DNA of 64,000 nucleotides from IMGVR_UViG_3300035145_003993:62001-126000; one strand, 5' to 3'; positions 9,374 through 53,909 are shown, numbered from the stretch's first letter. Program-made: numbers and translations. Notes: generated by a model not told the origin, from the sequence alone.

Positions 9374-10714
9374 TTAAAGTTTTTCTGCGACTATATTAGC
9401 TAACTCTGACCTATAGCCTCGAGTAAAATTAACATGACCTGTTAAACTTTCATCCTTTAACTTTTCGGTCACAATTGTTAAACCATTAGAAAATTTATTA
9501 ACATAAGGTAAATCAACTTGCTCTATATCACCTAAAAGTATTACTTTAGAATTTCTTCCAGTTCTTGTAATTACTGTTTTAAGCTCATGAACAGTAGCAT
9601 TTTGTGCTTCGTCTACAATTATTATAGAATCATTAAAACTTCTACCACGAATATGTGATAATGGTGCTACGTCTATTTGTCCTTTTTCCATCATCATTTC
9701 AAAATAAGTCAAGTCTCCAAATTGATTTCTAAAATTGTCAACAATAGGTGCAAGCCACGGTGACATTTTTTCGTTTAAGTCACCAGGCAAAAAACCAATA
9801 TCTTTCCCTACAGTTTGTATAGGTCTAGTAAAAATAATTCTCTTTTTAGTATTTTTTTCAATAAACTTAAGTGCTGTCATTAAAGCTAGATAAGTTTTGC
9901 CGCTGCCAGGTATTCCTGTAAGTGTTACAAGTGGAATTTCTTCATTTAATAATAATTCTAATGCAAAAATCTGTTCTTTATTTTTAGGCTCAATACCACT
10001 TTGTTTTTGTAGCTCTTGTTTTGTTTCTAATATAACTAAGTTTTTAGTATTTCTCATCATCAAACAAGATTGATTACTTCCGTTGTTAGCCTTTAAAATA
10101 ACAAATTCATTTTCACTTATATTTAGGTTATAACCGTTGTCAATAAGATCTTCTTTTATTTTTAAATGATTACCAGAATATGCTCTGTTAATAATATCTG
10201 AATCGACTAATAGTTCAACGTGTCCTTGGTATAAATTGTCTGCCTCAACAAATTCATAATCTGCGTAGTAATCATTTGCTTCTATACCAACAGCGTCACT
10301 TTTAACTCTAAGATTGATGTCTTTAGTTATAACAATAACTTTGTTTTCTTCTTCATTTTTATTAATGACAAAATAATTTGCATTAGAAATTATGATATTA
10401 TCATTAGTGTTTTTATCTAATCCTTCTAAACCTTCCCATGAAGATAAAGAACTTACTTTTAGATTTATATTATGTTTTTCAATAAAAACTCCAGTATTTA
10501 AACTGCCTTTTTCTCTTAACTCATCTAGAAATCTGTTGTAAAATCTTGCATTTTCCCCTAATAAACCTTCTCTTGTTTTAAACCGATCCATTTCTTCTAG
10601 GACAACCATAGGAATAACAATATCATTCCCATGCATGTTAAACAATGCATGCTTATCATAAAGAAGTACACTTGTATCAACAATAAAAGTTTTTCTGTTC
10701 TGTTTTTTGTCCAT
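9374..10714 (-). CDS. phoH: PIN domain-PhoH family ATPase (PhoH2/YlaK type)
   Basis: N-terminal PIN motif FIVDTSVLL...VLEEMD...ITKDINLRVK; Walker A GIPGSGKT; IGFLPG; RGRSF; IVDEAQN; GDIEQ. Confidence 0.92.
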   Translation of the reverse strand: MDKKQNRKTFIVDTSVLLYDKHALFNMHGNDIVIPMVVLEEMDRFKTREGLLGENARFYNRFLDELREKGSLNTGVFIEKHNINLKVSSLSSWEGLEGLDKNTNDNIIISNANYFVINKNEEENKVIVITKDINLRVKSDAVGIEANDYYADYEFVEADNLYQGHVELLVDSDIINRAYSGNHLKIKEDLIDNGYNLNISENEFVILKANNGSNQSCLMMRNTKNLVILETKQELQKQSGIEPKNKEQIFALELLLNEEIPLVTLTGIPGSGKTYLALMTALKFIEKNTKKRIIFTRPIQTVGKDIGFLPGDLNEKMSPWLAPIVDNFRNQFGDLTYFEMMMEKGQIDVAPLSHIRGRSFNDSIIIVDEAQNATVHELKTVITRTGRNSKVILLGDIEQVDLPYVNKFSNGLTIVTEKLKDESLTGHVNFTRGYRSELANIVAEKL

Positions 10715-18982: not shown

Positions 18983-19288
18983 TTAATTACACCACCAGTC
19001 ATCAAAAGAACCAAAATCTATTTGCTCATATAGACTATCAGGTATGCTTCCAACACAATCGTAACTAAACCATTCTCCTTCAAGTCTATACTTTCTTAAC
19101 TTCTCGTGTAATATTTTTTCTTTCCACCCAATATTTTTAAACTCTGCTATTAATTTCAGTCTATTAGGATTACCCGTTTGAAGCTGTTTTAATCTTTTTT
19201 GTGGGTCTTTAGATCTACCTATTTTTATCATTCCAGTTTTGTCTGATTGAATTAGATATAAACTGTCTTTGTTCATTTTAACACTCAT
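18983..19288 (-). CDS. T5orf172/GIY-YIG-like domain protein
   Basis: LYLIQ...IKIGRSKDPQKRLKQLQTGNP...EKILHEKL..YRLEGEWF. Confidence 0.85.
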   Translation of the reverse strand: MSVKMNKDSLYLIQSDKTGMIKIGRSKDPQKRLKQLQTGNPNRLKLIAEFKNIGWKEKILHEKLRKYRLEGEWFSYDCVGSIPDSLYEQIDFGSFDDWWCN

Positions 19289-19322: not shown

Positions 19323-20606
19323 ATGATTATTGTAACAGAAAATAAAAAAAATCACTATATGATTAAAAATTTTTTAATTGATTTTAAATCTTATCAAAAT
19401 ATAAATGAGAGTAGTAATGATAAAACTCATAAGTTCCACAAGGCATTTAATGATATGCCTGGACAAGACAATCCTGTTGGTTTTTATCCAAAAGTAAAAG
19501 ATAAAGAAAATGAGATAATCACAGACAAAGATATCACTAGGATTGCAACAGATGAGGAAATAGAATTTGTTGCTAATAAAAATAAAAAATATAAAAAATT
19601 TTTAAACAAATTTATCAATACAGCAAAAGTTTTACCATTTATGGCAGCTGTCTTATTATATAATTCAACACATATAGGATCTCCACAACATTATAAAGCT
19701 GTCGAGTTAATAAATGATGCAAATGAAAACGTTCAAGAAGAAGTTGATTTTAATGAAAAAAAATTATCATTGACAAAAAACGAAAAAGATATATTTATAG
19801 CTATAAAAAATAATCAATATGCATTTGATGGAGTTACTCAACAAAATGAAACTTCTTTGTATAATTTTGAAGGTTTTGCTTCAGAACCTTATAAAGATGC
19901 TGGAGGAATGTCGATAGGTTACGGAACTCAGCTTTTTTCAAAATGGAAAAATCCAAATAACTCAGGTTGGCAAAAAGTATTTTTTGAAAATATTCTAGGT
20001 AATCAAAAAACAAATAATCCAAAAACAGTTATAAGAAATGATATTGAAACAAAATTATCTGATATTACTAGTATTACTAAAAATGAAGCACGTAAAGCTA
20101 TAAATAAAATTCTTAAAAATAGAATAAAGTCTTTAGATTCTTACATTTTAGAACTACCAGGCACAGTACAGTTGGCTTATCTTGATATGACGATTAATAT
20201 GGGAGAAAATTTTAATATGCCAAAGTTTAAATCTCAATTGAAATACACATCAGATTTAATCAAAGAAGGAGAATTTGAAGTAGCAATTCAGGCTTTATCC
20301 GCTTCAATGAATCAAGCAGAGTTTAAAGTTGACCCTAATTATTTATCAATTATGCATTCTGATGATGAAAGTTATGATCCTTCAAAAGAAATTTATAGAT
20401 CTGCTTGGGCTACACAAAGTAAAAAAGCTTATTTAGCTAGTTCTGAAGAAGGAGAAATTCATAGGAGACCAAGATTCCTTTTAAGTTTAATGCAAGAAGG
20501 AGTTGACTTATTAAGAAGTAAATTAAATACTAAAAAAGAAAATACTAAAAAAGATGTTAACGAATCATATAGTATTAAAAGATTATACAAACATTTATTT
20601 GTATAA
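19323..20606 (+). CDS. Protein with a phage lysozyme-like (GH24/pesticin-type) muramidase domain
   Basis: LYNFEGFASEPYKDAGGMSIGYGT has the E-x8-D..T/SIGYG lysozyme signature; LAYLDMTINMG. Confidence 0.7.
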   Translation: MIIVTENKKNHYMIKNFLIDFKSYQNINESSNDKTHKFHKAFNDMPGQDNPVGFYPKVKDKENEIITDKDITRIATDEEIEFVANKNKKYKKFLNKFINTAKVLPFMAAVLLYNSTHIGSPQHYKAVELINDANENVQEEVDFNEKKLSLTKNEKDIFIAIKNNQYAFDGVTQQNETSLYNFEGFASEPYKDAGGMSIGYGTQLFSKWKNPNNSGWQKVFFENILGNQKTNNPKTVIRNDIETKLSDITSITKNEARKAINKILKNRIKSLDSYILELPGTVQLAYLDMTINMGENFNMPKFKSQLKYTSDLIKEGEFEVAIQALSASMNQAEFKVDPNYLSIMHSDDESYDPSKEIYRSAWATQSKKAYLASSEEGEIHRRPRFLLSLMQEGVDLLRSKLNTKKENTKKDVNESYSIKRLYKHLFV

Positions 20607-20617
20607 GAAAGAAAAAA

Positions 20618-21370
20618 ATGAAAAAATCACTATTATTGTTCACTTTATTTTTGACAAACTTTGCTTTTGGTCAAGTTAACATAGAATCTATTAGAAATAA
20701 TGATAAACAAAAACCTCTTTGGGGAGAAGTTAAAGGTGGTTTAGAACTCCAAAGAGGAAATGTAGATATTACTTCTTTTGATTTAGATATCTTAGTTCAT
20801 TATAAAAAAAAGAAACATCATATCTTTTTACAATCAAAAAACTCTCAAGGGCAACAGGATGATAAAAAGTTTAAAAATAATTCTTTTATACATCTTAGAT
20901 GGACTTGGATGACCTGGGATATAATAGGTTTAGAACTTTTTACACAACTTCAACAAGATGAATTTAAATCACTCAAAATAAGACAATTAAATGGCGGTGG
21001 CTTTAGAGCTGAAGTATTAAAAAGAAAAGATTTTTCTTTAAGTTTAGGAACAGGAGTAATGTTAGATTACGAAGAAGTAGCTGAAAAAGAAAAAAGTTCT
21101 TTTTTTCGTAGTACTTCTTACTTAACCCTTATAAAATATTTTGATAAAAAGAAAAATAATTTAACGCTGTTTACACTTTACTATCAACCTTTATTTATCA
21201 ATGTAAACGATTATAGGATTAATCTAGAAGCAAACGTCCGTACAATTTTAATATCTTCTTGGAATATCTTTGTGGACAATTCAATTAATTATCTTTATGA
21301 TACAAAACCGCCTGAAGGTATTAATACAAATGATTTAATCATAAAAACTAATATTACATACACTTGGTAA
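20618..21370 (+). CDS. DUF481-like outer-membrane beta-barrel protein
   Basis: Signal peptide; amphipathic strands; GGLELQRGNVD; FTQLQQDEF; C-terminal TNITYTW ends in an aromatic residue (BAM signal). Confidence 0.75.
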   Translation: MKKSLLLFTLFLTNFAFGQVNIESIRNNDKQKPLWGEVKGGLELQRGNVDITSFDLDILVHYKKKKHHIFLQSKNSQGQQDDKKFKNNSFIHLRWTWMTWDIIGLELFTQLQQDEFKSLKIRQLNGGGFRAEVLKRKDFSLSLGTGVMLDYEEVAEKEKSSFFRSTSYLTLIKYFDKKKNNLTLFTLYYQPLFINVNDYRINLEANVRTILISSWNIFVDNSINYLYDTKPPEGINTNDLIIKTNITYTW

Positions 21371-21373
21371 ATT

Positions 21374-21625
21374 TTAATTATTTTCTATATACTCGAATAT
21401 CTCTTCACAACTATTTATTTTTTTTATTTCTTCTAAACTTATATCACCACAACTTTTAACATAATGAATCGCTCCACGATGTAAACCTAAGCAATCTGTT
21501 ACAATATTTTTAATTTGATCACAGAGTGTAATTTTGTTACTTATATCTTCTTTATTATCAACTTCAGAACATGAAAGCGTAAAAGTAAAGAAAAACGCAA
21601 AACATATAATTATTTTTTTTAACAT
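21374..21625 (-). CDS. Putative lipoprotein
   Basis: MLKK-hydrophobic-TLSC lipobox; further Cys residues. Confidence 0.55.
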   Translation of the reverse strand: MLKKIIICFAFFFTFTLSCSEVDNKEDISNKITLCDQIKNIVTDCLGLHRGAIHYVKSCGDISLEEIKKINSCEEIFEYIENN

Positions 21626-21809: not shown

Positions 21810-22790
21810 TTAAATATTTACATCAAAATCTAAAATTCTTATCGACTCGGGAGAAGCATTTTCAATATTACTTAAAACAATTCCAATATTATCTTCATGT
21901 AAATCTGACGTTGTAATATAACCTAAAATTTTTTTAAAGAAAATTATATCTTTTCCAAAATCTACTTCACTAAAATCTTTAACCAAAGATAATTTAGACA
22001 TTTGTTCATAAATTGTTTGGTTACTTATATTAGGAAAAATTGAATCTAATTTTCCTGTTCTTTTTATTTTAGACACTTTTTCTTTAATCTCTTCCCCAAA
22101 TTCAGGAAATAGTTTTGTAAAAGATAAATAATCCCGGTGTAAATCATAATCACTTAAATCTAATTTTGATTTTTTTAATTTTCTTCTTTCAAAATGTACT
22201 AAACTCATCAACGTTTTTGTAATAAACTCTTTAAAATTTTTAGAGTCTTTTTTAAATTTATTATTTTCTCCTTCTAAACAATTCCAAAAAGTTGGAAAAA
22301 TTTTCTTTAATAAATTTAAATCTTGTATTTTATCTAATTGAACAACTTTTTCGCTAATTACCCACCAAGGATTTGAGTTAATTTTGTCCCAAGAATATAT
22401 TTGTACAAATCCTTCTTGAGCACCTGATCCATGTTTTCTATTAATTTGTATATCTAATTCTTTTTTATTATTTATTGCACCTGAAATGTTCATTGCAATT
22501 TTTAAAACCCATGGACTATTATTTAAAGAATAACCTTCTCTACTTAATCCTTGCCCTATTAAATTAATATTGTCTTTGTATAAAGTATTTTCTAACTTTT
22601 GATAAATCAAAGAAGTCTTGTCACGATAATAGTCATAATCATCTTCAGAGACAGATTCTTTAAATTTTAATATGACATTTTGCAGCATATCAGAATATTT
22701 TTTTATCTCTTTATCATCTGAAGATTTGAGGCTTTCATTTAAAAACTTGTTCCAGTCTTCGATTAATAAATTCCATTCTTTATTATTCAT
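21810..22790 (-). CDS. Protein-kinase-like-fold enzyme with N-terminal WNKFLNE leader
   Basis: GQGLSREGY (Gly loop), VLKIA (VAIK Lys), DLHEDNIG (catalytic loop), RILDFD (DFG-like). Confidence 0.75.
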   Translation of the reverse strand: MNNKEWNLLIEDWNKFLNESLKSSDDKEIKKYSDMLQNVILKFKESVSEDDYDYYRDKTSLIYQKLENTLYKDNINLIGQGLSREGYSLNNSPWVLKIAMNISGAINNKKELDIQINRKHGSGAQEGFVQIYSWDKINSNPWWVISEKVVQLDKIQDLNLLKKIFPTFWNCLEGENNKFKKDSKNFKEFITKTLMSLVHFERRKLKKSKLDLSDYDLHRDYLSFTKLFPEFGEEIKEKVSKIKRTGKLDSIFPNISNQTIYEQMSKLSLVKDFSEVDFGKDIIFFKKILGYITTSDLHEDNIGIVLSNIENASPESIRILDFDVNI

Positions 22791-22883
22791 AATTTTCTTT
22801 CTGATTTTTGAAATATTATATTATATATTTTACAATATAATTAAAAGAAAATTAAAATAACTTAAACGTAGTAATTTTAAATT

Positions 22884-23237
22884 TTAACCGTCAAATTCAT
22901 CATCGTCAGGAAAAGGATTCCCTTCAGTATCAAGTCCTATATTAAAGAGCATGTTTTCATTATATCTATTAAGAAAATCATTGATTTCTTCATTTGAAAT
23001 ATTTCTTCCCGTCAATTGTCTTCCAAATCTTCTTAAAAATTCTCGATTGTTATTTGCTCTTTCTTCATCTGATCGTTTAATATCTTCAATTTGGCTTTCA
23101 ACGTCTGAAAGAGCTAAACTTGTTGGATCTTGTCCATCATCTGGTAGAGGTGCAAAAATATCATCATCATCATTATAATTGTTTTCTGCAATAACTTTTC
23201 TTATAATACTTCTTAACTTACTCTCTGTTATTTTCAT
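22884..23237 (-). CDS. Hypothetical protein with MKITESKLRSIIRKVIAE leader
   Basis: SD AGGAG; leader shared with 24883-25380 and 25490-25951. Confidence 0.65.
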   Translation of the reverse strand: MKITESKLRSIIRKVIAENNYNDDDDIFAPLPDDGQDPTSLALSDVESQIEDIKRSDEERANNNREFLRRFGRQLTGRNISNEEINDFLNRYNENMLFNIGLDTEGNPFPDDDEFDG

Positions 23238-23371
23238 ATAAACTCCTATTAAGTCTTATTTTATATATTATTATTTATATATATTATTGTTTAAATAAAT
23301 ATCATATAAATTATGAATATAGATTAAGGTCATCCAGAAAATAGACACCTTATTCGAGAAATAATTTACTT

Positions 23372-23917
23372 TTATACTTCAATAAAGTCAATAAACGACG
23401 ATTCACGTAATTTTTTCAATACAATCAACTCGCCAACTTTATAATAACACTTAGATAAAGAACTATCAATATCTCCTGAAAGTTGATGATACTCAATATC
23501 AGGCCTCATCATATACTTATCCCACACACTTTTAGCATCATCAGACACTTTACCACGATCACTCATCAAACAAACACCCTCCTCCGACGCCTTTTCAATC
23601 AATATTTCATAAAGTAAAGGCCCAAAACCTTTAGTCACAGGAAAAGTCTCAAATATAAAAAAGTTTCCTGATGATCTTTCACTCAATTCTCTTTCAAAAT
23701 CAATCGCTCCACTCACCACATCATCCTTAACATCATACTCAACTCGACCATAGTCTCCATCCAGATCGTATACAATCTTAACCTTACTCCCGTTTCGAGA
23801 TATTTCTTCAAGATTGTTAACAATCCTTAATATACTCTCTACACTCGCTACTTCAAAGCTCTCACTTAAAGAAACACGCCATCCTTCAACTAACTCTCGA
23901 TACTCTTTTCGATTCAT
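23372..23917 (-). CDS. GNAT-like acetyltransferase-fold protein with leader
   Basis: KGFGPLLYEILIE...LMSDRGKVSDDAKSVWDKY fits GNAT motif A plus S-x-x-A-x-x-W; coding strand is very C-poor. Confidence 0.6.
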   Translation of the reverse strand: MNRKEYRELVEGWRVSLSESFEVASVESILRIVNNLEEISRNGSKVKIVYDLDGDYGRVEYDVKDDVVSGAIDFERELSERSSGNFFIFETFPVTKGFGPLLYEILIEKASEEGVCLMSDRGKVSDDAKSVWDKYMMRPDIEYHQLSGDIDSSLSKCYYKVGELIVLKKLRESSFIDFIEV

Positions 23918-23957
23918 AAGTTAAATCCTGTTTGATTTTTTTACTCTGTCTATATAT

Positions 23958-23999
23958 TTAAAAAATAAAATTTTGAATATAATTTTCTAATAACTTCAT
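23958..23999 (-). CDS. 13-aa mini-ORF MKLLENYIQNFIF (leader-like remnant)
   Basis: AAAGGA SD upstream; resembles KILLESYILN of the adjacent gene. Confidence 0.3.
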   Translation of the reverse strand: MKLLENYIQNFIF

Positions 24000-24040
24000 A
24001 TAAAATTCCTTTAATTATATAGTAAATATTTATTAAAATT

Positions 24041-24886
24041 CTAAGTTAAACTATTTAAACAAACAACGTTGTTTTGAAAAAGACCAATTATTTTTTTCCA
24101 CACTTCTAAAGAATCACTGTGAAAATTTTGATAAAATTCATTAAAATCTTCATAATCTTCCATTTTATCTCTAAATATATTTTCATCAACTTGATTAATA
24201 TGTCTGTTTATAATAGTAAAAGCTCCTAAACTTGGAATAAAATCCATACCACCAACGCCTTCAGTAAAACCATAATGTTTTAAAAATATCAAAGCATCGT
24301 TCTGATATATTGTTGACAGTTCACGATATCCATTTACATCTTTTAACATTGAATACTTATTTATAATATCTTTAGTAGATCTTGACATTTTATAATCTTT
24401 ATAATCATACCACCCTACGAAATCGACAATTCTATGCCAAATATCATGTACCATCCAATCTAAATTATCTTGAACTAAATTAACTTTCCCTTTATCAAGG
24501 AAATTTCCAACATTAATACAGATAAATACGGGTAATTCATCTTCAAATTCTCCACCAACACTGTCAATATCTTTCTTAGGAATAAATGACTTAATATGAT
24601 CAATTATGTTTTCATTCTTTTCGAAAATATAACATTGTTTGTGTATAAATTCAAATTGTTCATCACTCAAATATACTCTTTTTGAACCATCATATTGATC
24701 AAACATATTCGAAAATAATTTCTGATCACAGTTTATACCTATTAGCCACGCATTAAGATCAAAATTTTCTTGAGAAACTTTTTCTTTCGATAGATTTTTG
24801 TTTAACTGAAATTTGCTAAAACGTCCTTTTTCAAGTAAAAGGTTTAAAATATAACTTTCTAACAATATTTTTTCTTTTTTATTCAT
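24041..24886 (-). CDS. Hypothetical protein with LLESYILNLLLE leader
   Basis: 281 aa; contains WMVHDIWH (HD-like, possibly metal-binding). Confidence 0.6.
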   Translation of the reverse strand: MNKKEKILLESYILNLLLEKGRFSKFQLNKNLSKEKVSQENFDLNAWLIGINCDQKLFSNMFDQYDGSKRVYLSDEQFEFIHKQCYIFEKNENIIDHIKSFIPKKDIDSVGGEFEDELPVFICINVGNFLDKGKVNLVQDNLDWMVHDIWHRIVDFVGWYDYKDYKMSRSTKDIINKYSMLKDVNGYRELSTIYQNDALIFLKHYGFTEGVGGMDFIPSLGAFTIINRHINQVDENIFRDKMEDYEDFNEFYQNFHSDSLEVWKKIIGLFQNNVVCLNSLT

Positions 24887-25380
24887 TTGTCAATTCTATT
24901 TCCAAATTTATTATATTTGTTACCAAAAAAAGCTTTTCTAAATGAATCAATTTTTTTCTTATTTTCAAGATCAATTATTTTTTTTGAACTTTCTCTTGCA
25001 TCATATAACGATTTTGTTTTTAAATCAAAACCTTCAAGATAACTTATTGCGTCATTCACACATTCTTTAAATTCTATAGGATTCTCACTTTTTGTATGTT
25101 CTTCATATAGAAAATTTATAAATTTATGAAAATGTCCAGGGTCATTATAAACTTCTTTTGTCAAATTACTTAGGTCTTCACCATTAATTTTTACAAAGAC
25201 ACCAGTGTTAGGTGACATATTAATATTAAAGTATTGATCATCTTTTATAGGAAAGTTATTTTTTAATTCTCTTTCCATTTCTTCGAAAAATTTTTCTTTT
25301 GTATTATATTTTGTTATAGAACTAGATTCTTTAATTATTTGTCTTATAAGACTTCTTAATTTGTTCTCTGTTATTCTCAC
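24883..25380 (-). CDS. Hypothetical protein with MRITENKLRSLIRQIIKE leader
   Basis: GTG start with AGGAG SD. Confidence 0.65.
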   Translation of the reverse strand: MRITENKLRSLIRQIIKESSSITKYNTKEKFFEEMERELKNNFPIKDDQYFNINMSPNTGVFVKINGEDLSNLTKEVYNDPGHFHKFINFLYEEHTKSENPIEFKECVNDAISYLEGFDLKTKSLYDARESSKKIIDLENKKKIDSFRKAFFGNKYNKFGNRIDK

Positions 25381-25489
25381 GTTAACTCCTAAATAACTTT
25401 ATTTATAAATCTATATATTATCTTATATTATAAATTAAAGTCTATTCGTGATAAACGTAAGACAATCTTTTTACTTAATACTGAATTTT

Positions 25490-25951
25490 TTAACTCATTA
25501 ATTTTTTAAACTCAACTAAAACTTCTTTAATGTTTTCACTCATTTTTACAATGTCATATAAAAATATATTATTATGATCAATTTCAACTCTTACTACAGC
25601 ATAATAATCAGGTTCTGGGAATTTAAGTTGATATGGTTCTGCTTTCACCAATAAATATCCACACTCGCCCATATTATCTCGACTCCAAATTGCATTATGT
25701 CTAACAAATTCATTTGTAAACAAAGCAGCCGTATATGCATCATGTCCTAAATCCAATCCTAAATCCAATCGATCAGAAATCTTGTGTCCAATAGTAACTA
25801 ATTCGTCTCTAAGCGTATCTTCATCTAATTTCTTTACAAACAAATCAGTAAAAATTTCTTTTTCATCACGATCATGTAGGTTTTCTTCACCATATGACTC
25901 TTTAATTACTTGACGAATAATATTTCTTAATCTACTCTCTGTTATTTTCAT
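25490..25951 (-). CDS. Hypothetical protein with MKITESRLRNIIRQVIKE leader
   Basis: AGGAG SD; last minus-strand gene before the divergence point. Confidence 0.65.
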   Translation of the reverse strand: MKITESRLRNIIRQVIKESYGEENLHDRDEKEIFTDLFVKKLDEDTLRDELVTIGHKISDRLDLGLDLGHDAYTAALFTNEFVRHNAIWSRDNMGECGYLLVKAEPYQLKFPEPDYYAVVRVEIDHNNIFLYDIVKMSENIKEVLVEFKKLMS

Positions 25952-26040
25952 TTTTTTCTCCTAATGAAATCTTATAACTTATAATATATATCTTTTATAA
26001 TATAAAAAAAATTTAATTTATATAAACGTTGTGACTCAAG

Positions 26041-26460
26041 AGCCACTCCTTCTACATCAAAACTCAAACAAAACAGTCATAACACACTTCAAACATTCTT
26101 AAAACTTCAAATATATACACTTTTAAAAATTTCATATAAACCTCTTCAATTCTTATTTAAAATTTGGATCCAAATTTATCTCTGTTAAATCTTTTAATCC
26201 ACTTCAATTAAAACACACATCAACTCAATCAAGTCTTTACTCACACAATTCTCAAATCAAATCACACATACCTCACACCTCCTTCAGCAAACTCAAAAAC
26301 TTTTCAAAATTTTTCTCCGGAAATTTTTCCCGAAAAACCACTTTTTACTTTTTACACTTCGCCACATTTTTTGCCCACATACACACACATATAACACGTC
26401 TTATCTAATACACACTTCTCTCACATTTACACTTTCTCACACTTTCTTTTATATGTGGTA
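26041..26460. other. Non-coding G-depleted (CA/CT-rich) tract
   Basis: 16 G in 420 nt on the + strand (manual count); no ORF >=60 aa. Confidence 0.8.
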
Positions 26461-26543
26461 CAAGGTATTCACTTATACTACATCTCTCGAGTAAAAAATT
26501 TTCTCGGAAAAAAATTGGCTAGTCGGTTAGCGCTTTTTTCGCG

Positions 26544-26638
26544 GTTACACTTCAGAGAGTTAACGCTGGGGCCTCCCCCAGGGGGGCCTCAGAAGCGCCC
26601 AGTTACACCCCGGGGCATAGAGGGGCATCAAGTGTAAC
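26544..26638. repeat. GC-rich palindrome flanked by GTGTAAC boxes in both orientations
   Basis: GGCCTCCCCCAGGGGGGCC hairpin at 26570-26588; GTTACAC at 26544 and 26602; GTGTAAC at 26632. Confidence 0.75.
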
Positions 26639-26689
26639 TCGAGCGATTGAAATACACAAGCTTTCGAGGCATGACCAAATTGATCGGTC

Positions 26690-27005
26690 AAGTGTAACTC
26701 ATCCCTGAAAATGGTATAATAAACCATAAGGGGGGAACAGGAACAACGGATTCCTAAAGGTTAAAATAAAAAAAACCTCAAGCCTTAAAAAACTTTTTGA
26801 AAACTAGGAATAAAAACTTCAGGCATTAATAAGTGTAACCCTATAATAATAGGTTTATAATAAACCATAAGGAACAACGGTTCCAATAAGGACAAATTAA
26901 AAAAATCCTTCAAGTTTAAAAAACTCTTTGAAAATTAGGAAATAAAAACCCAGCATTAATAAGTGTAACTTTTAAATATATAATTTATTATAAACCATAA
27001 GGTAT
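26690..27005 (+). repeat. Tandem about 130-140-bp imperfect repeat, each unit carrying a promoter
   Basis: GTGTAA at 26692, 26833 and 26963. Shared AACAACGG(A)TTCC, TTAAAAAACTyTTTGAAAAyTAGGAA and GCATTAATAAGTGTAAC segments. Confidence 0.9.
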
Positions 27006-27067
27006 AAAGGCCTTATTAAATAATCTTTAACTTACCTACAACCCTATTATAAAAGGATTAAATTAAA

Positions 27068-27679
27068 ATGGAAAACTCAACACTAATGCAACAATTGTTT
27101 CAAGATTACATTCAAAACGGTGGTCAACCTAAAATTACCAGTTTCCGTTTGCATCTTGAAAAGCTAATGAAAACAGAAATCAAGCCCCTTTGCGGAGGTT
27201 CAAGAAGACTTGCCCCAGGAGCTCATGATTGGAGAAACGAATTAAAAGATCGATTTGGAGGTCGAGGTAATAAATGGATGAAAGTTTCCATTGAGGAAAT
27301 TAATCCATCTCTCGATAAATTTGATGCTGAAGGTTATGATACAGAAGATTACCGATCTCATATCGAACGAGCCGGTTTCGCTTGGATTCGATATTATGGA
27401 CCAAAGCTTAATAATGGAATTAAGGTCGCGGCATTTACTGTTCATACATTTGATGCAACAATTTATCAGCCTCAAACTCAGCACTATATACCGGTTGATC
27501 GTTTGGATGAAACAATTGAACCATTAAATGGAACTCCATTCAGCCTAAAGCTTGAAGAAGCTGGATCGATCGTTCAAAATGATACTGATGATGAAGTTAC
27601 TCCTTTAGATGAGGAATCCGCGAACTTAAACGATGAAATCCTAAGTCAAATCCAAGATTTGGAACTAGAGGACCTCTAA
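27068..27679 (+). CDS. Early protein, paralogous family A (copy 1)
   Basis: FRLHLEK..KPLCG..WR..L..RF.GRG.KW..AWIRYYGP..LNGTPFSLKLE, acidic tail; AAAGGA SD. Confidence 0.85.
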   Translation: MENSTLMQQLFQDYIQNGGQPKITSFRLHLEKLMKTEIKPLCGGSRRLAPGAHDWRNELKDRFGGRGNKWMKVSIEEINPSLDKFDAEGYDTEDYRSHIERAGFAWIRYYGPKLNNGIKVAAFTVHTFDATIYQPQTQHYIPVDRLDETIEPLNGTPFSLKLEEAGSIVQNDTDDEVTPLDEESANLNDEILSQIQDLELEDL

Positions 27680-29815: not shown

Positions 29816-30454
29816 ATGAATAACTCAAACCTACAAACCTCTGAACAGGAGAACAGCATGTCTACAATTCAAAAACTTTTCCAAGAATATCTCGAATCAG
29901 GCGGTCAACCAAAACTTACAAGCTTCAGATTTCATATCGAAAAACTAATGAAGACCGATATAAAACCTTTATGCGGTCGATCTGGAAAGTCTTCATCAGG
30001 TAATGATTGGAGAAAAGATCTTATGAATCGATTTAAAGGTCGCGGATCAAAATGGGTCTTTGTAAGTCTCGAAGAAATTAAAGATACTCTCGATCGTTTT
30101 GACCAAGAAGGAATTGATACAGAAGATTACAGATCTTGGACTGAAAAGAAACAAAAAGCTTGGATTAGATTTTATGGTCCAAGGCTCGATAATGGAATCA
30201 AAGTCGCGGCATTTACAGTTCATACCCTAGATTCAACAATCTATCAGCCTCATACATTACATTATATTCCAATCGATCGTCTAGATGAAACAATTACTCC
30301 ATTAAACGGGACTCCCTTCAGTCTCAAGCTTGAAGTTGATGATGTCCAACAGGAAAATGATACTGAATCAAACGAAGAAATTATCGAATATATCTCTAAA
30401 TTTGATGAAGATCTCTTACAAGGACTCGAAGATTTACAGAACGATGATCTATAA
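29816..30454 (+). CDS. Early protein, paralogous family A (copy 2)
   Basis: Co-linear with 27068-27679, with long identical stretches (GIKVAAFTVHT, PLNGTPFSLKLE). Confidence 0.88.
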   Translation: MNNSNLQTSEQENSMSTIQKLFQEYLESGGQPKLTSFRFHIEKLMKTDIKPLCGRSGKSSSGNDWRKDLMNRFKGRGSKWVFVSLEEIKDTLDRFDQEGIDTEDYRSWTEKKQKAWIRFYGPRLDNGIKVAAFTVHTLDSTIYQPHTLHYIPIDRLDETITPLNGTPFSLKLEVDDVQQENDTESNEEIIEYISKFDEDLLQGLEDLQNDDL

Positions 30455-51361: not shown

Positions 51362-51443
51362 AATTTATTATACATAGTTTATTTCTTTGATAAAATAAAA
51401 TTAGAGCTTCTTATGATAAAAAAATATTTTAAGAAGTTCATTT

Positions 51444-51516
51444 GGGCTTTTAGTGTAATGGTTAGCACGTCACTCTCATAAAGTGTTTAGTCTGGGTTCA
51501 AATCCCAGGGAGCCTA
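51444..51516 (+). tRNA. tRNA with CAT anticodon (Ile2 or elongator Met)
   Basis: Acceptor GGGCTTT/GGAGCCT; D stem GTGT/GCAC; loop CTCATAA; T arm CTGGG-TTCAAAT-CCCAG. Confidence 0.85.
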
Positions 51517-51542
51517 TTTATTAAATTTTTTAAGAGTTTAAA

Positions 51543-51908
51543 ATGAAAAATAATATATGGTCTAGAAATAGACATGTACTTAAAAAAATAAAAAACCCTT
51601 CTAAAAGAAAATATGAGATTGAAATAGTAATACCTGAATTGACTTTTGAAGGTGATAAGAAAAAGCCAGATTTTGGTAAGCTTTGTATAAATTTTTGTCC
51701 TAATGACTGTGTTATTGAACTTAAATCTTTAAAAGAATATATCTACGAATTTAGAAATCAACTTTACTCATATGAAAGAATAATAAATGTAATTTTTGAT
51801 GATATTATGGAAATATATAATCCGAAAAGTTTAAGTATAATTTTAAGTACAAATCCAAGAGGTGGTATATCATCAAAATTAAAAGTCGATTCTGAAAATA
51901 ATGTTTAA
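51543..51908 (+). CDS. QueF-like T-fold protein lacking the catalytic Cys
   Basis: PELT...[26 protein letters not shown]; the canonical CPxTGQPDF is replaced by EGDKKKPDF. Confidence 0.8.
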
Positions 51909-51931
51909 AATATATAGATAAAGGAAAACAG

Positions 51932-53230
51932 ATGTTAAATAAAAATAACTTAGACTTTAAGATCAAAAACATAGATTTAGCTTCTTGGGGAAGAAACGAA
52001 GTAATACTTGCAGAAAAAGATATGCCAGGATTAATGTCTTTAAGAGAAAGATATGGAAAAACAAAACCCTTAACAGGAGCAAGAATTACTGGGTGTCTTC
52101 ATATGACAATCCAGACTGCAGTATTAATTGATACACTAATTGAATTAGGTGCTCAAGTTAGATGGATGACTTGCAACATTTTCAGTACACAAGATCACGC
52201 TGCAGCTTATATTGCAAGTAAAGGTATTCCTGTTTTTGCTTGGAAAGGAATGACTGAAGATGAATATGAAGAATGTTTAAATGATGTTTTATGGTTTGAC
52301 GATCAAGGGCCAAATATGATTTTAGACGATGGAGGAGATCTTACTAAATTTATAATAGAAAATCATTCTGATCTAATACCTAACATTAGAGGGGTCTCAG
52401 AAGAAACAACTACAGGGGTACTTCGTCTTAGAGAATTTGAAGAACAATTAAAACTTCCTTTTCCTGCGATTAATGTTAATGATTCTGTTACAAAATCTAA
52501 ATTTGATAATAAGTACGGTTGCAAAGAAAGTTGTGTTGATGCAATTAGAAGAGCAACAGATACAATGATGGCAGGAAAAGTTGCAACAGTTGCTGGTTAT
52601 GGTGATGTTGGAAAAGGATCAGCAGCATCATTAGCAGCTGCTGGATGTAGAGTTATTGTAACTGAAATTGATCCTATTTGTGCTTTACAAGCTGTTATGG
52701 ATGGATTTAAGGTAACTACAATGGAAGAAGCTGTTGTTGAATCTGACATAATCGTAACAGCTACCGGTAACTATAACGTTGTTAATAGTCATCACTTTAA
52801 TCAAATGAAAGACAATGTGATTGTTTGTAATATTGGACACTTCGATAATGAAATTGACGTTAAATGGTTAATAGAAAATGCTGAAGAAACAAATATTAAA
52901 CCTCAAGTTGATCTTTATAATTTAGATGGAAAATCAGTTATATTATTAGCTAAAGGTAGACTTGTTAATTTAGGTTGTGCAACAGGACATCCAAGTTTTG
53001 TAATGTCAGCTTCATTTACAAATCAAGTCCTTGCTCAAATTGAACTTTGGACGAAATCTTCTTTTTACGAGAATAAAGTTTATGTTCTTCCTAAAATCTT
53101 AGATGAAGAAGTTGCTCGACTACATTTAGAAAAAGTTGGTGCAAAACTTGATATATTAAGTGAAAATCAAGCTGATTATATTAATGTAGAAATAGATGGT
53201 CCTTTTAAAAATAAAGATTATAGATATTAA
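51932..53230 (+). CDS. ahcY: S-adenosyl-L-homocysteine hydrolase
   Basis: [13 protein letters not shown]; [12 protein letters not shown]; LDDGGD; EETTTGV; [12 protein letters not shown]; GYGDVGKG; NIGHFD; [18 protein letters not shown]; C-terminal YRY. Confidence 0.97.
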
Positions 53231-53302
53231 ATAAAAAAATTATACAATTATTAATATAGTCATATAATAAAAATAGATTAATTAATTTTAATCTAAAAAC
53301 AA

Positions 53303-53375
53303 GCTGGTGTAGCTCAATTGGCAGAGCAGCTGATTTGTAATCAGCAGGTTAAGGGTTCAAATCCCCTCACCAGCT
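53303..53375 (+). tRNA. tRNA-Thr(TGT)
   Basis: GCTGGTG/CACCAGC; anticodon arm GCTGA-TTTGTAA-TCAGC; GGTTCAAATCC. Confidence 0.95.
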
Positions 53376-53423
53376 TTCCCGTAATTAAACAATTACAGAC
53401 ACAGACACAGAAAGGAGTTTGAT

Positions 53424-53627
53424 ATGGGAGATTCAAATAAAAATGGTTACGAGATTCGTGAGAGTTTGCTTGGACTTGCAGTTGGAATTTTGGATACAAG
53501 AAATGCAACATTACGTGAAAACGAGTATATAAAGCCAGAAGGACAGCAACAAGAAATTCAACCTTACGATGTACAAGAAGTTTTACAAACTGCTGAAACA
53601 TTGTATCAATTCGTCTCCAAGAAGTAA
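53424..53627 (+). CDS. Conserved phage-type hypothetical protein
   Basis: NGYEIRESLL..A..L...EVLQTAE.LYQFVSKK; AAAGGAG SD. Confidence 0.7.
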   Translation: MGDSNKNGYEIRESLLGLAVGILDTRNATLRENEYIKPEGQQQEIQPYDVQEVLQTAETLYQFVSKK

Positions 53628-53636
53628 TGAGTTTTT

Positions 53637-53804
53637 ATGCTGCATAAAGTAGTAAGATTATTATTGAGTTTACATGGAATTTTTCACGTTATTGAAACAG
53701 CGTTAAATCTATATGAAGGTGCTTATCTTAGTGCAGCATTAACTTTATTCTCTTCGATTATCATGTTACTTGGAGCTTATATTGATTATGATCATCACAA
53801 GTAA
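53637..53804 (+). CDS. 55-aa membrane peptide
   Basis: MLHKVVRLLLSLHGIFHVIE...DHHK. Confidence 0.5.
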   Translation: MLHKVVRLLLSLHGIFHVIETALNLYEGAYLSAALTLFSSIIMLLGAYIDYDHHK

Positions 53805-53833
53805 TTATGTCACCATGATCATGGTGTCACTTT

Positions 53834-53905
53834 GGGATATTAGCTCAATGGTAGAGCAGTGGACTTTTAATCCATTGGTTGTAGGTTCGAGTCCTACATG
53901 TCCCA
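53834..53905 (+). tRNA. tRNA-Lys(TTT)
   Basis: GGGATAT/ATGTCCC; GTGGA-CTTTTAA-TCCAT; GTAGG-TTCGAGT-CCTAC. Confidence 0.95.
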
Positions 53906-53909
53906 TTCA

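Follow-up and report, generated by a model that had tools for sequence, protein, structure and literature searches.

Interchangeable N-terminal leaders on unrelated proteins of an uncultured T4-like phage: a candidate capsid-targeting system

Introduction

What links six adjacent genes of a phage if their products resemble each other only over the first 18 to 19 residues? This question is raised by a locus of IMGVR_UViG_3300035145_003993, of which a window of 64,000 nucleotides (bases 62001-126000 of the 211,364-bp IMG/VR record) was analysed; coordinates are those of the window unless marked as genome positions. The locus consists of six tandem minus-strand open reading frames (ORFs), g1 to g6, at 21810-25951 (Table 1). 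An earlier note, made from the sequence alone, had described it as an array of unrelated cargo proteins with a common N-terminal leader ending in (I/L)xE and had proposed a capsid-targeting system for injected effectors. We regard a cleavable propeptide system of this kind, similar to the capsid-targeting sequence (CTS) of phage T4, as the best explanation for the leaders and as a fairly probable one, as argued below from comparative analysis. In T4, internal proteins that are otherwise unrelated carry N-terminal propeptides of 10-19 residues (the CTS), by which they are targeted to the prohead core and which the protease gp21 removes; the injected defence proteins form a "highly diverse set" with "only a conserved CTS" in common (PMC3012670, PMC9026906, PMC5694885).

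The source record is linear, continuous and approximately 84% complete. A T4-type head module encoding TerL, portal, protease and capsid protein is located at genome 2.4-14 kb, outside the window. In the Pfam search, the prohead protease, encoded on the minus strand at genome 9084-9686, was assigned to Peptidase_S77, the T4 gp21 type (PF03420, E 1.2e-28), and the major capsid protein to the gp23 family (PF07068, E 5e-80). A protease of the type invoked by the earlier note is therefore encoded, and the T4 system of CTS and internal proteins is an apt precedent (PMC3012670, PMC9026906). The nearest deposited capsid proteins, those of Flavobacterium phage immuto, Rhodothermus phage RM378, Microcystis phage Mel-JY01 and an uncultured huge phage, are only 33-44% identical, and near-identical DNA is present in wetland, estuary and seawater metagenomes, which argues for a distant environmental T4-like myovirus. 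As judged from the sequence, the source phage is a marine "far-T4" myovirus, distant from its deposited relatives. Since the array lies within the continuous record, at genome 83.8-88.0 kb and beside a divergent intergenic region of 1.1 kb, the assumption of the earlier note that it adjoins a genome end was abandoned.

Three leader classes in a six-gene array

All six ORFs were found with exactly the N-termini that had been quoted for them, and the DNA string said to be common to three leaders is present in g2, g5, and g6. Three leader classes were distinguished. Class A has the consensus M[KR]ITE[SN][KR]LRx[IL]IRx[VI]IxE and occurs in g2, g5, and g6; class B, MNxKE[WY]xxL[IV]ExWxxxLxE, occurs in g1 and g3; class C, (M..)LLE[NS]YIxxxLLE, occurs in g4. 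All three close with [I/L]-x-E at residue 18-19 and have one hydrophobic stripe (i, i+3, i+4, i+7, i+8) in common, as expected for an amphipathic, positively charged helix. In the AlphaFold2 model of g1, computed from an alignment of seven homologues (predicted local distance difference test, pLDDT, 76), the leader forms a helix from residue 3 to 21 with a low-confidence break (pLDDT<50) at 17-24. Shine-Dalgarno-like sites are situated 5' of most of the six ORFs, and the stop codon of g5 overlaps the start of g4.

An amphipathic, positively charged N-terminal helix might also act as a signal for another compartment, either as a membrane-binding helix or as an export tag. This is very improbable: the hydrophobic face is too narrow, the helix is too charged and has no hydrophobic core, and both the acidic, cleavage-type end of the leader and its similarity to proteins of the head module (see below) would be left unexplained.

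Hidden Markov models (HMMs) of the leaders, trained on sequences of other contigs only, recovered all six leaders among the N-termini of the 272 genes of this AT-rich genome; a scan of this type had been suggested in the earlier note. The class-A HMM detected g2, g5, and g6 (E 1e-11 to 6e-13), the class-B HMM g1 (E 1.9e-10) and g3 (about 1e-10), and the class-C HMM g4 (E 0.011) together with five further N-termini elsewhere in the genome (E 2e-5 to 0.03). None of 1432 internal windows reached E 0.03 with the leader HMMs. Furthermore, N-termini are 21-fold enriched, relative to internal positions, in the pattern L..hh..hh.(x)E, where h stands for any hydrophobic amino acid. The common leader of the earlier description therefore stands, although that description had overlooked the division into three classes, the leader genes elsewhere in the genome and the leader-like motifs of the head module.

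Exchange of leaders and variability of the locus

Homologous cargos were observed with different leader classes. In the g1 cargo family, the leader is of class B for g1 and P0002, of class A for P0003 and P0004, and of class C for L043:5733-6719 and L013:11217-12014. When this family is aligned, every leader ends at one Glu column (E19, followed by S), and homology begins with S-L-K-S-S-D. For the g3 cargo family, leaders of class B were observed in six phages and a class-A leader in L013:8951-9766. Homologues of g4 begin with MRLLENYIKSxLLE followed by RGRF, and a homologue of the g5 cargo was found at L018:1006-1458. Proteins similar to g2 (116-119 residues, MKITESKLRNIIRSVIAEN...) are encoded at a different locus in other contigs (P0022 cluster; matched by eye).

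In seven related contigs the genes flanking the array are 65-91% identical to those of the window, whereas matches of the array genes are confined to the first 19-21 residues or are absent. A relative in a seawater DNA sequencing run keeps 25899-26044, i.e., the g6 leader together with its upstream DNA, as well as 25383-25457, while the 441 bases in between (25458-25898) are swapped for 435 bases less than 85% alike, with the boundary in the Glu18 codon. The leader is thus portable, as had been proposed: it is joined to homologous cargos in different classes, exactly at the terminal Glu, in an array that is hypervariable between conserved flanks.

In the RNA-library run X20, a contig consists of a 93%-identical g2 homologue, 21 other bases and then the start of a g6-like leader (matching 22884-23237 and 25917-25956). 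Because this contig joins the g2 homologue to a g6-like leader, the gene order of the array differs in a close relative.

A second cluster of leader genes is located on both strands at genome 138497-143604 (L005). It comprises a paralogue of g1 (MIYNKSVFINLWKEYINE..), a DUF5824 protein and further proteins whose leaders resemble class C. Three very basic small proteins (pI 10-11; genome 139.9-141.7 kb) start with M..LLENFIKEIILDE followed by Lys/Arg runs; these are closer to the DNA-binding internal proteins of T4 type than g1-g6 are.

Occurrence of the leaders in related phages and metagenomes

Searching IMG/VR with degenerate DNA patterns for the first 13-14 codons yielded 45 distinct class-A and 17 class-B leader proteins on about 40 contigs. 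Positions 14-19 of class A lie outside the search pattern, and there I/L16 is present in 40 of 45 proteins, E18 in 35 of 45, and S, N, A or T at residue 19 in 32 of 45. For class B, L17 was observed in 16 of 17 and E19 in 14 of 17 proteins. From residue 20 onward the information content of class A is below 1 bit, so that conservation collapses past the Glu, and the same drop was found in 143 library proteins. A strict DNA scan of IMG/VR for the class-C start M-x-LLENYIK returned chance-like matches only; class C was seen in this genome and the g4 family, plus two homologues of the g1 family.

The invariant leader residues are written with two to five synonymous codons (E5, for instance, as GAG 21 times and as GAA 21 times), which argues for selection on the peptide rather than on an RNA element.

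Profile A3, built from 32 class-A N-termini and thus covering class A only, was compared with 1.84 billion representative proteins and matched 1010 proteins (clusters) in public metagenomes at E<=0.001. Among the best 150 matches, which have a median length of 116 residues, 143 begin with M[KR][ILVM][ST]E at residue 1.

Cargo proteins

The six cargos are 98-307 residues long past the leader, and g2, g5, and g6 cargos are ORFans. As the earlier note had stated, the cargos are unrelated: no pairwise BLASTP match at E<1e-3 was obtained for the five class-A and class-B cargos. The 61 leader proteins from IMG/VR fall into 43 cargo BLAST clusters, and 142 library proteins, with a median isoelectric point (pI) of 4.8, into 104. 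Pfam and PHROG scans of the g1-g6 proteins gave nothing significant; when 123 leader-bearing library proteins were compared with Pfam, the only match was a zinc ribbon.

These numbers bear on the assumption that the six genes are ordinary paralogues, derived from one duplicated gene of which only the N-terminus remained conserved. Their tandem arrangement on one strand and the DNA similarity of g2, g5, and g6, which reaches into the upstream region, would suit such an origin. Their cargos differ in size and in predicted fold (kinase-like, GNAT-like, other), and homologous cargos bear non-homologous leader classes, so that, together with the cluster count of the library, descent from one duplicated gene is hardly credible.

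For g1, the best PDB matches of the model are all kinase-like, i.e., APH(2''), choline kinase, CK2, PINK1 and Rio (Foldseek E 2e-4, VIA Z 7.3; template modelling (TM) score about 0.25), and K97, D296-x4-N301 and D321 are invariant in the seven homologues. The g1 family has no Pfam match and no PDB match in the profile search; the Atlas lead is PF27024. The kinase-like assignment of the earlier note is supported at the level of fold and motif, and the modelled g1 cargo is likely kinase-like, which falls short of certainty because the TM scores are low and Pfam is silent.

In case of g3, Atlas structural matches (TM 0.56-0.67) lead to viral clusters with members of PF00583 (GNAT), while a profile search gave no Pfam and no PDB sequence match. 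Thus the proposed GNAT-like nature of this modelled cargo is kept as a lead. An HD domain or fold, which had been suggested for g4 (model pLDDT 63), was not found in Pfam, in PDB profiles, in the fold search of PDB and AFDB clusters or in the Atlas, and this assignment was dropped. Fold matches of g4 to zinc metalloproteases are weak (E about 1) and were disregarded.

Leader-like motifs in the head module

Adjacent to the protease gene, a conserved head-module protein of 141 residues begins with MAKVSRSMLKSIVKECLVE followed by LLAEGL, an N-terminus that is kept in six phages. It aligns with class A in register, N-terminus to N-terminus and Glu to Glu. The product of the next gene (95 residues) contains (K/R)(I/V)TPxxIRRLVxEE near its N-terminus. 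In the capsid protein, VLRE followed by SST is situated about 20 residues before the conserved VRR...QPM block, in a region that presumably corresponds to the LTE-A cleavage site of T4 gp23.

The density of [IL]xE exceeds the expectation from composition in an acidic, scaffold-like protein of 505 residues (24 sites, z 3.5), in a 286-residue protein encoded between portal and protease (z 3.7) and in the protease itself (z 3.2); three leader-bearing proteins are likewise rich in this motif. Furthermore, the best internal matches of the class-B and class-C HMMs in the whole proteome are head-module proteins, and a head protein of 291 residues holds an internal LLENSLKEYIEELILSE. An S77 protease is encoded in 7 of the 10 long leader-bearing contigs, the other three being fragments (24-42% complete). 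A predicted complex of the S77 protease with residues 1-40 of g6 scored 0.01, which is no evidence either way.

Internal motifs of the LLEN(S/Y) type are carried by the 291- and 286-residue head proteins (genome 7320-10548, L004; L048-L052), and TVRELAI(M/L)AGL(V/I)E is common to the 505- and 291-residue proteins. A designation of the small head-module proteins as "gp67/68-like" was rejected: it is positional only, and hhalign comparisons of the two small families with T4 gp68 and gp67 showed no relation.

Regulatory context of the leader genes

The genes g1, g5, and g6 are preceded by an ACGTTTA box at a distance of 78-79 nt, and only one other among the 272 genes has this box upstream. These three boxes overlap sigma-70-like -35/-10 pairs; scans for sigma-70 promoters and terminators are uninformative in this AT-rich DNA. 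In related contigs the box occurs at -77 to -81 of many leader genes, preceded by GGGTGTCTC..GAGTCAC, and a second type of cassette, ..TTCGGGAGAAATTTTGAAAACTTTTTG.., precedes other leader genes. The imperfect inverted repeat GTGKCTC..GAGTCAC at the cassettes would form a stem, for which no compensatory changes were observed.

Considering these cassettes, the leader could be the passenger of a mobile regulatory unit (promoter, 5' untranslated region and first codons), as in PeSL elements, with a peptide that is useful only for translation initiation. In T4-like phages, PeSL promoter-terminator motifs indeed mediate shuffling (PMC2839356, PMC4122927), the cassettes of both types stand at fixed spacing, and the seawater relative retains leader and upstream DNA while its cargo differs. 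Most leader genes, however, lack either cassette (CGTTTA is present for 8 of 62), and the same leader peptide occurs under quite different upstream DNA and GC content, and also inside proteins. Together with the synonymous codons of the invariant residues and the occurrence of three peptide classes with one hydrophobic pattern and one end motif, this makes a mere passenger role most improbable. The PeSL cassettes of T4-type phages resemble the present ones in their promoter-like motifs and imperfect inverted repeat at fixed spacing 5' of variable ORFs of a hypervariable region (PMC2839356, PMC4122927), but here the conserved unit often runs into the coding region as a selected peptide, and the hairpin is putative. 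Pure paralogy and readings as an RNA element were rejected on account of cargo clusters, synonymous codons and leader swaps.

The sequence TATAAATA, which corresponds to the T4 late-promoter consensus, is located upstream of only 10 of the 272 genes (hypergeometric P 0.002). Four of these are leader genes, g2 and g5 among them, and two belong to the head, one being that of the scaffold-like protein. In two marine metatranscriptome runs, contigs cover homologues of g1, g2, g3, g5, and g6 but not the spacer at 26048-26740, which is covered in a DNA run. This suggests that leader genes are transcribed in nature, although coverage in RNA libraries falls short of proof.

The N-terminal ..LLKKKEEIELSRRIKKGD.. 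of a 250-residue ORF at genome 146881-147633 resembles region 2 of the sigma-70 family, by eye only. If this protein were truly sigma-like, the phage may direct a promoter class of its own, with a bearing on the timing of leader genes.

Capsid-targeting propeptide or docking helix

From these sequence features we infer docking, packaging, cleavage, injection and an effector role of the leader proteins as follows. During prohead assembly, the leader helix would attach the protein to scaffold or core, the gp21-type serine protease (Peptidase_S77) would then cut after the leader Glu, and the mature cargo would remain in the head with the DNA and enter the host at infection. Candidate cargos are a kinase-like enzyme, a GNAT-like protein and small acidic ORFans, and new ones would be gained by recombination, with the leaders and the promoter-like cassettes upstream as junctions. 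In the T4 CTS, targeting is the task of residues 4 and 7, and processing that of residues 8 and 10 (PMC9026906); transferred to the longer leader, the first task would fall to L8, I11, I12, and V15 and the second to I16 and E18.

Like the CTS of the T4 proteins IPI, IPII, IPIII, and Alt, the leader is a short propeptide-like segment on unrelated proteins that ends in hydrophobic-x-Glu before a small residue, here after 18-19 residues, and it is found together with genes for a gp21-type protease and a gp23-type capsid protein and with a locus that is polymorphic between related phages. The T4 N-terminus MKTYQEFIAE followed by A (ipII, ipIII) has the hydrophobic i/i+3/i+4 pattern in common with the leaders, and g2 ends in ..VIAE similar to ..FIAE. 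Unlike the T4 CTS, the leader is about one heptad longer and comes in three classes instead of one, the family comprises at least 1010 clusters, and promoters are sigma-70-like.

Other known systems agree in part. In the giant phages phiKZ, 201phi2-1 and SPN3US, N-terminal propeptides of head-internal proteins are also removed after Glu by gp21-related proteases, and the SPN3US paralogues gp53 and gp54 are identical in their first 15 residues and diverged in the rest (PMC5694885). The motifs of these phages are S/A/G-x-E or A-x-E and their propeptides often exceed 100 residues, whereas here I/L-x-E terminates a helix of 18-19 residues in the company of a T4-type capsid and protease. The Dar system of phage P1 likewise comprises several unrelated head proteins, which are injected to protect the incoming DNA (PMC12810830, PMC9024508); incorporation in P1 is hierarchical via DarA/Hdf and is not known to need one common short leader. 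The arrangement described here is thus known in kind from the T4 CTS, and new in its leader families unrelated in sequence, its three interchangeable classes, its mostly acidic cargos and its very wide metagenomic spread.

Several observations weigh against a CTS-type propeptide. The [I/L]xE motif alone is common in the proteome (28% of N-termini versus 18% of internal control windows); by itself it is weak evidence, while the whole leaders are, convincingly, far beyond chance. No homology of the leaders to the T4 CTS MKTYQEFIAE is detectable, 10 residues being too few to establish it, and the match of the 141-residue head protein with class A is statistically weak (hhalign P 0.017, HH probability 2.7%). 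With the g6 leader, tblastn against 50,697 records of cultured or deposited phages gave no real match, the sole lead being a weak match in the uncultured 484-kb phage LR756508; since none of the cultured phages in these records has the leader, no virion proteome is applicable. Neither the T4 late sigma factor gp55 nor gp45 was found when searched for in this genome, and for lack of a gp55 homologue TATAAATA cannot confidently be called a late promoter.

A further group of observations would suit a different role, that of an uncleaved docking or oligomerisation helix for a hub outside the capsid (RNA polymerase, chaperone, nucleoid or membrane), e.g., for tethering early host-takeover proteins. 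The leader helix is amphipathic with a narrow hydrophobic stripe. The cargos of g1-g6 have a pI of 4.1-7.8, with g2 and g6 acidic, and so are mostly acidic and not DNA-binding, unlike the basic IPII and IPIII of T4. The ACGTTTA/sigma-70-like cassettes suggest transcription by the host polymerase, possibly early, and give no pointer to late, head-coupled expression; g1, g5, and g6 head a leftward transcription unit beside small ORFan genes that are presumably early. A HAD-phosphatase-like protein and others, encoded at scattered positions among genes of replication and nucleotide metabolism, likewise have class-C-like N-termini. Finally, P0049, P0142, P0018, P0128, and P0086 contain two to three copies of the class-A motif, some internal or C-terminal without a preceding Met, as would suit a general interaction helix; these proteins could be polyprotein-like precursors or multivalent docking proteins. 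T4 Alt has propeptides at both ends (PMC9026906), so that copies away from the N-terminus are compatible with processing as well.

A docking helix leaves unexplained why each of the three classes closes with [I/L]-x-Glu before a small P1' residue and why conservation breaks off exactly there, why conserved head-module proteins beside the protease have leader-like starts, and why the motif is in excess in scaffold-like proteins. We consider it unlikely, though to be taken seriously, and favour the CTS-type propeptide over it because of the Glu-terminated boundary and the similarities in the head module.

Flanking regions and further features

The features of the array and its regulatory elements are listed in Table 1. 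The divergent region 25952-27067, which bounds the array, contains three repeat units of about 130 bp (TATAATAAACCATAAGG; AGGAACAACGG...AAAACTTTTTGAAAA), a GC-rich segment at about 26540-26640 and the words GTTACAC/GTGTAAC, repeated in both orientations. The part 26480-26740 folds better than shuffled sequences (z -3.2), an Rfam search of the region gave nothing above noise, and a similar GC-rich piece seems to adjoin the array in L013. The region could be an operator/iteron cluster, a promoter array or a small RNA.

Table 1. Positions of the array genes, leaders and upstream elements in the window
Feature	Position	Strand	Description
g1	21810..22790	-	326 residues; class-B leader residues 1-19 MNNKEWNLLIEDWNKFLNE then S; likely protein-kinase-like cargo
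g1 leader	22734..22790	-	19 codons, ends L-N-E
ACGTTTA box of g1	22863..22869	-	79 nt upstream of start; promoter-like cassette
g2	22884..23237	-	117 residues; class-A leader MKITESKLRSIIRKVIAE then N; acidic cargo, pI 4.1
g2 leader	23184..23237	-	18 codons, ends I-A-E
T4 late-promoter consensus TATAAATA of g2	23272..23279	-	42 nt upstream
g3	23372..23917	-	181 residues; class-B leader MNRKEYRELVEGWRVSLSE then S; cargo GNAT-like as a lead, GFGPLLYE core
g3 leader	23861..23917	-	19 codons, ends L-S-E
Putative class-C leader remnant	23958..23999	-	cargo-less mini-ORF MKLLENYIQNFIF then stop; Shine-Dalgarno-like site present
g4	24041..24886	-	281 residues; class-C-type leader MNKKEKILLESYILNLLLE then K; cargo with conserved WMVHDIWHR
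g4 leader	24830..24886	-	19 codons, ends L-L-E
g5	24883..25380	-	165 residues, GTG start; class-A leader MRITENKLRSLIRQIIKE then S
g5 leader	25327..25380	-	18 codons, ends I-K-E
g5 upstream cassette	25400..25458	-	ACGTTTA 25452-25458 (-78); sigma-70-like TTATCA-16-TATAAT; TATAAATA 25400-25407 (-27)
g6	25490..25951	-	153 residues; class-A leader MKITESRLRNIIRQVIKE then S; acidic cargo
g6 leader	25898..25951	-	18 codons, ends I-K-E
Divergent intergenic region bounding the array	25952..27067	.	1.1 kb; g6 cassette, repeats, GC-rich element
g6 upstream cassette	within 25952..27067		GTGGCTCTTGAGTCAC and ACGTTTA at 26023-26029 (-78)
Cassette copy TTTCGGGA..TTTTGAAAAGTTTTTG	about 26300-26340		in the 25952-27067 region

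The other flank of the array carries genes for a DUF481 protein, a small lipoprotein-like protein and a lysozyme-like protein. The DUF481 protein (20618-21370; PF04338, E 3e-21) has a signal-peptide-like N-terminus and is of the outer-membrane beta-barrel type; the small lipoprotein-like gene (21374-21625) is situated on the strand opposite to it, and both are conserved at the array edge in related contigs. For the 427-residue protein encoded at 19323-20606, weak matches were obtained with phage lysozyme in Pfam (E 0.003) and with the PHROG "internal virion lysozyme motif" (E 0.0035); relatives retain its N-terminal half, and the remainder is variable. The T4 genes ipII and ipIII adjoin gene e, as the leader array adjoins the lysozyme-like gene.

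Beyond the intergenic region, paralogous plus-strand genes at 27068-27679 and 29816-30454 (203 and 212 residues; ..QQLFQ(D/E)Y(I/L)..GGQPK..) open the rightward block, and both match one gene of related contigs with about 50% identity. Further genes in the window encode a PIN-PhoH fusion protein (9374-10714, 446 residues), a small T5orf172/MUG113 (GIY-YIG-like) protein (18983-19288) and three tRNAs, Met-CAT, Thr-TGT and Lys-TTT (51443-53906).

Implications

Proteins that are injected together with the DNA are the first to act on the host, in anti-restriction and takeover, and their detection normally requires cultured phages and virion proteomics. If the leader is a capsid-targeting propeptide, a tag of 19 residues marks injected proteins in metagenomes, in at least 1010 clusters that are almost all ORFans. 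It is tempting to go further and to regard the leaders of classes A, B, and C as the universal, interchangeable packaging-and-cleavage tag of a large uncultured T4-like clade of marine, estuarine and wetland habitats, marking more than 1000 families of head-internal, injected proteins; we hold this to be possible, and slightly less probable than its negation. If true, these families would include kinase-like and GNAT-like enzymes as well as small acidic ORFans, maybe with anti-defence factors among them, and the repertoire of injected effectors of uncultured phages would be readable from sequence. For loading capsids with foreign proteins, the leaders would provide a second CTS, independent of that of T4. 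Natural junctions, which fall at the Glu codon and in the upstream cassettes, show a route of cargo capture, and the CTS principle of T4 would be ancient and would have diversified into leader families that replace each other on one cargo.

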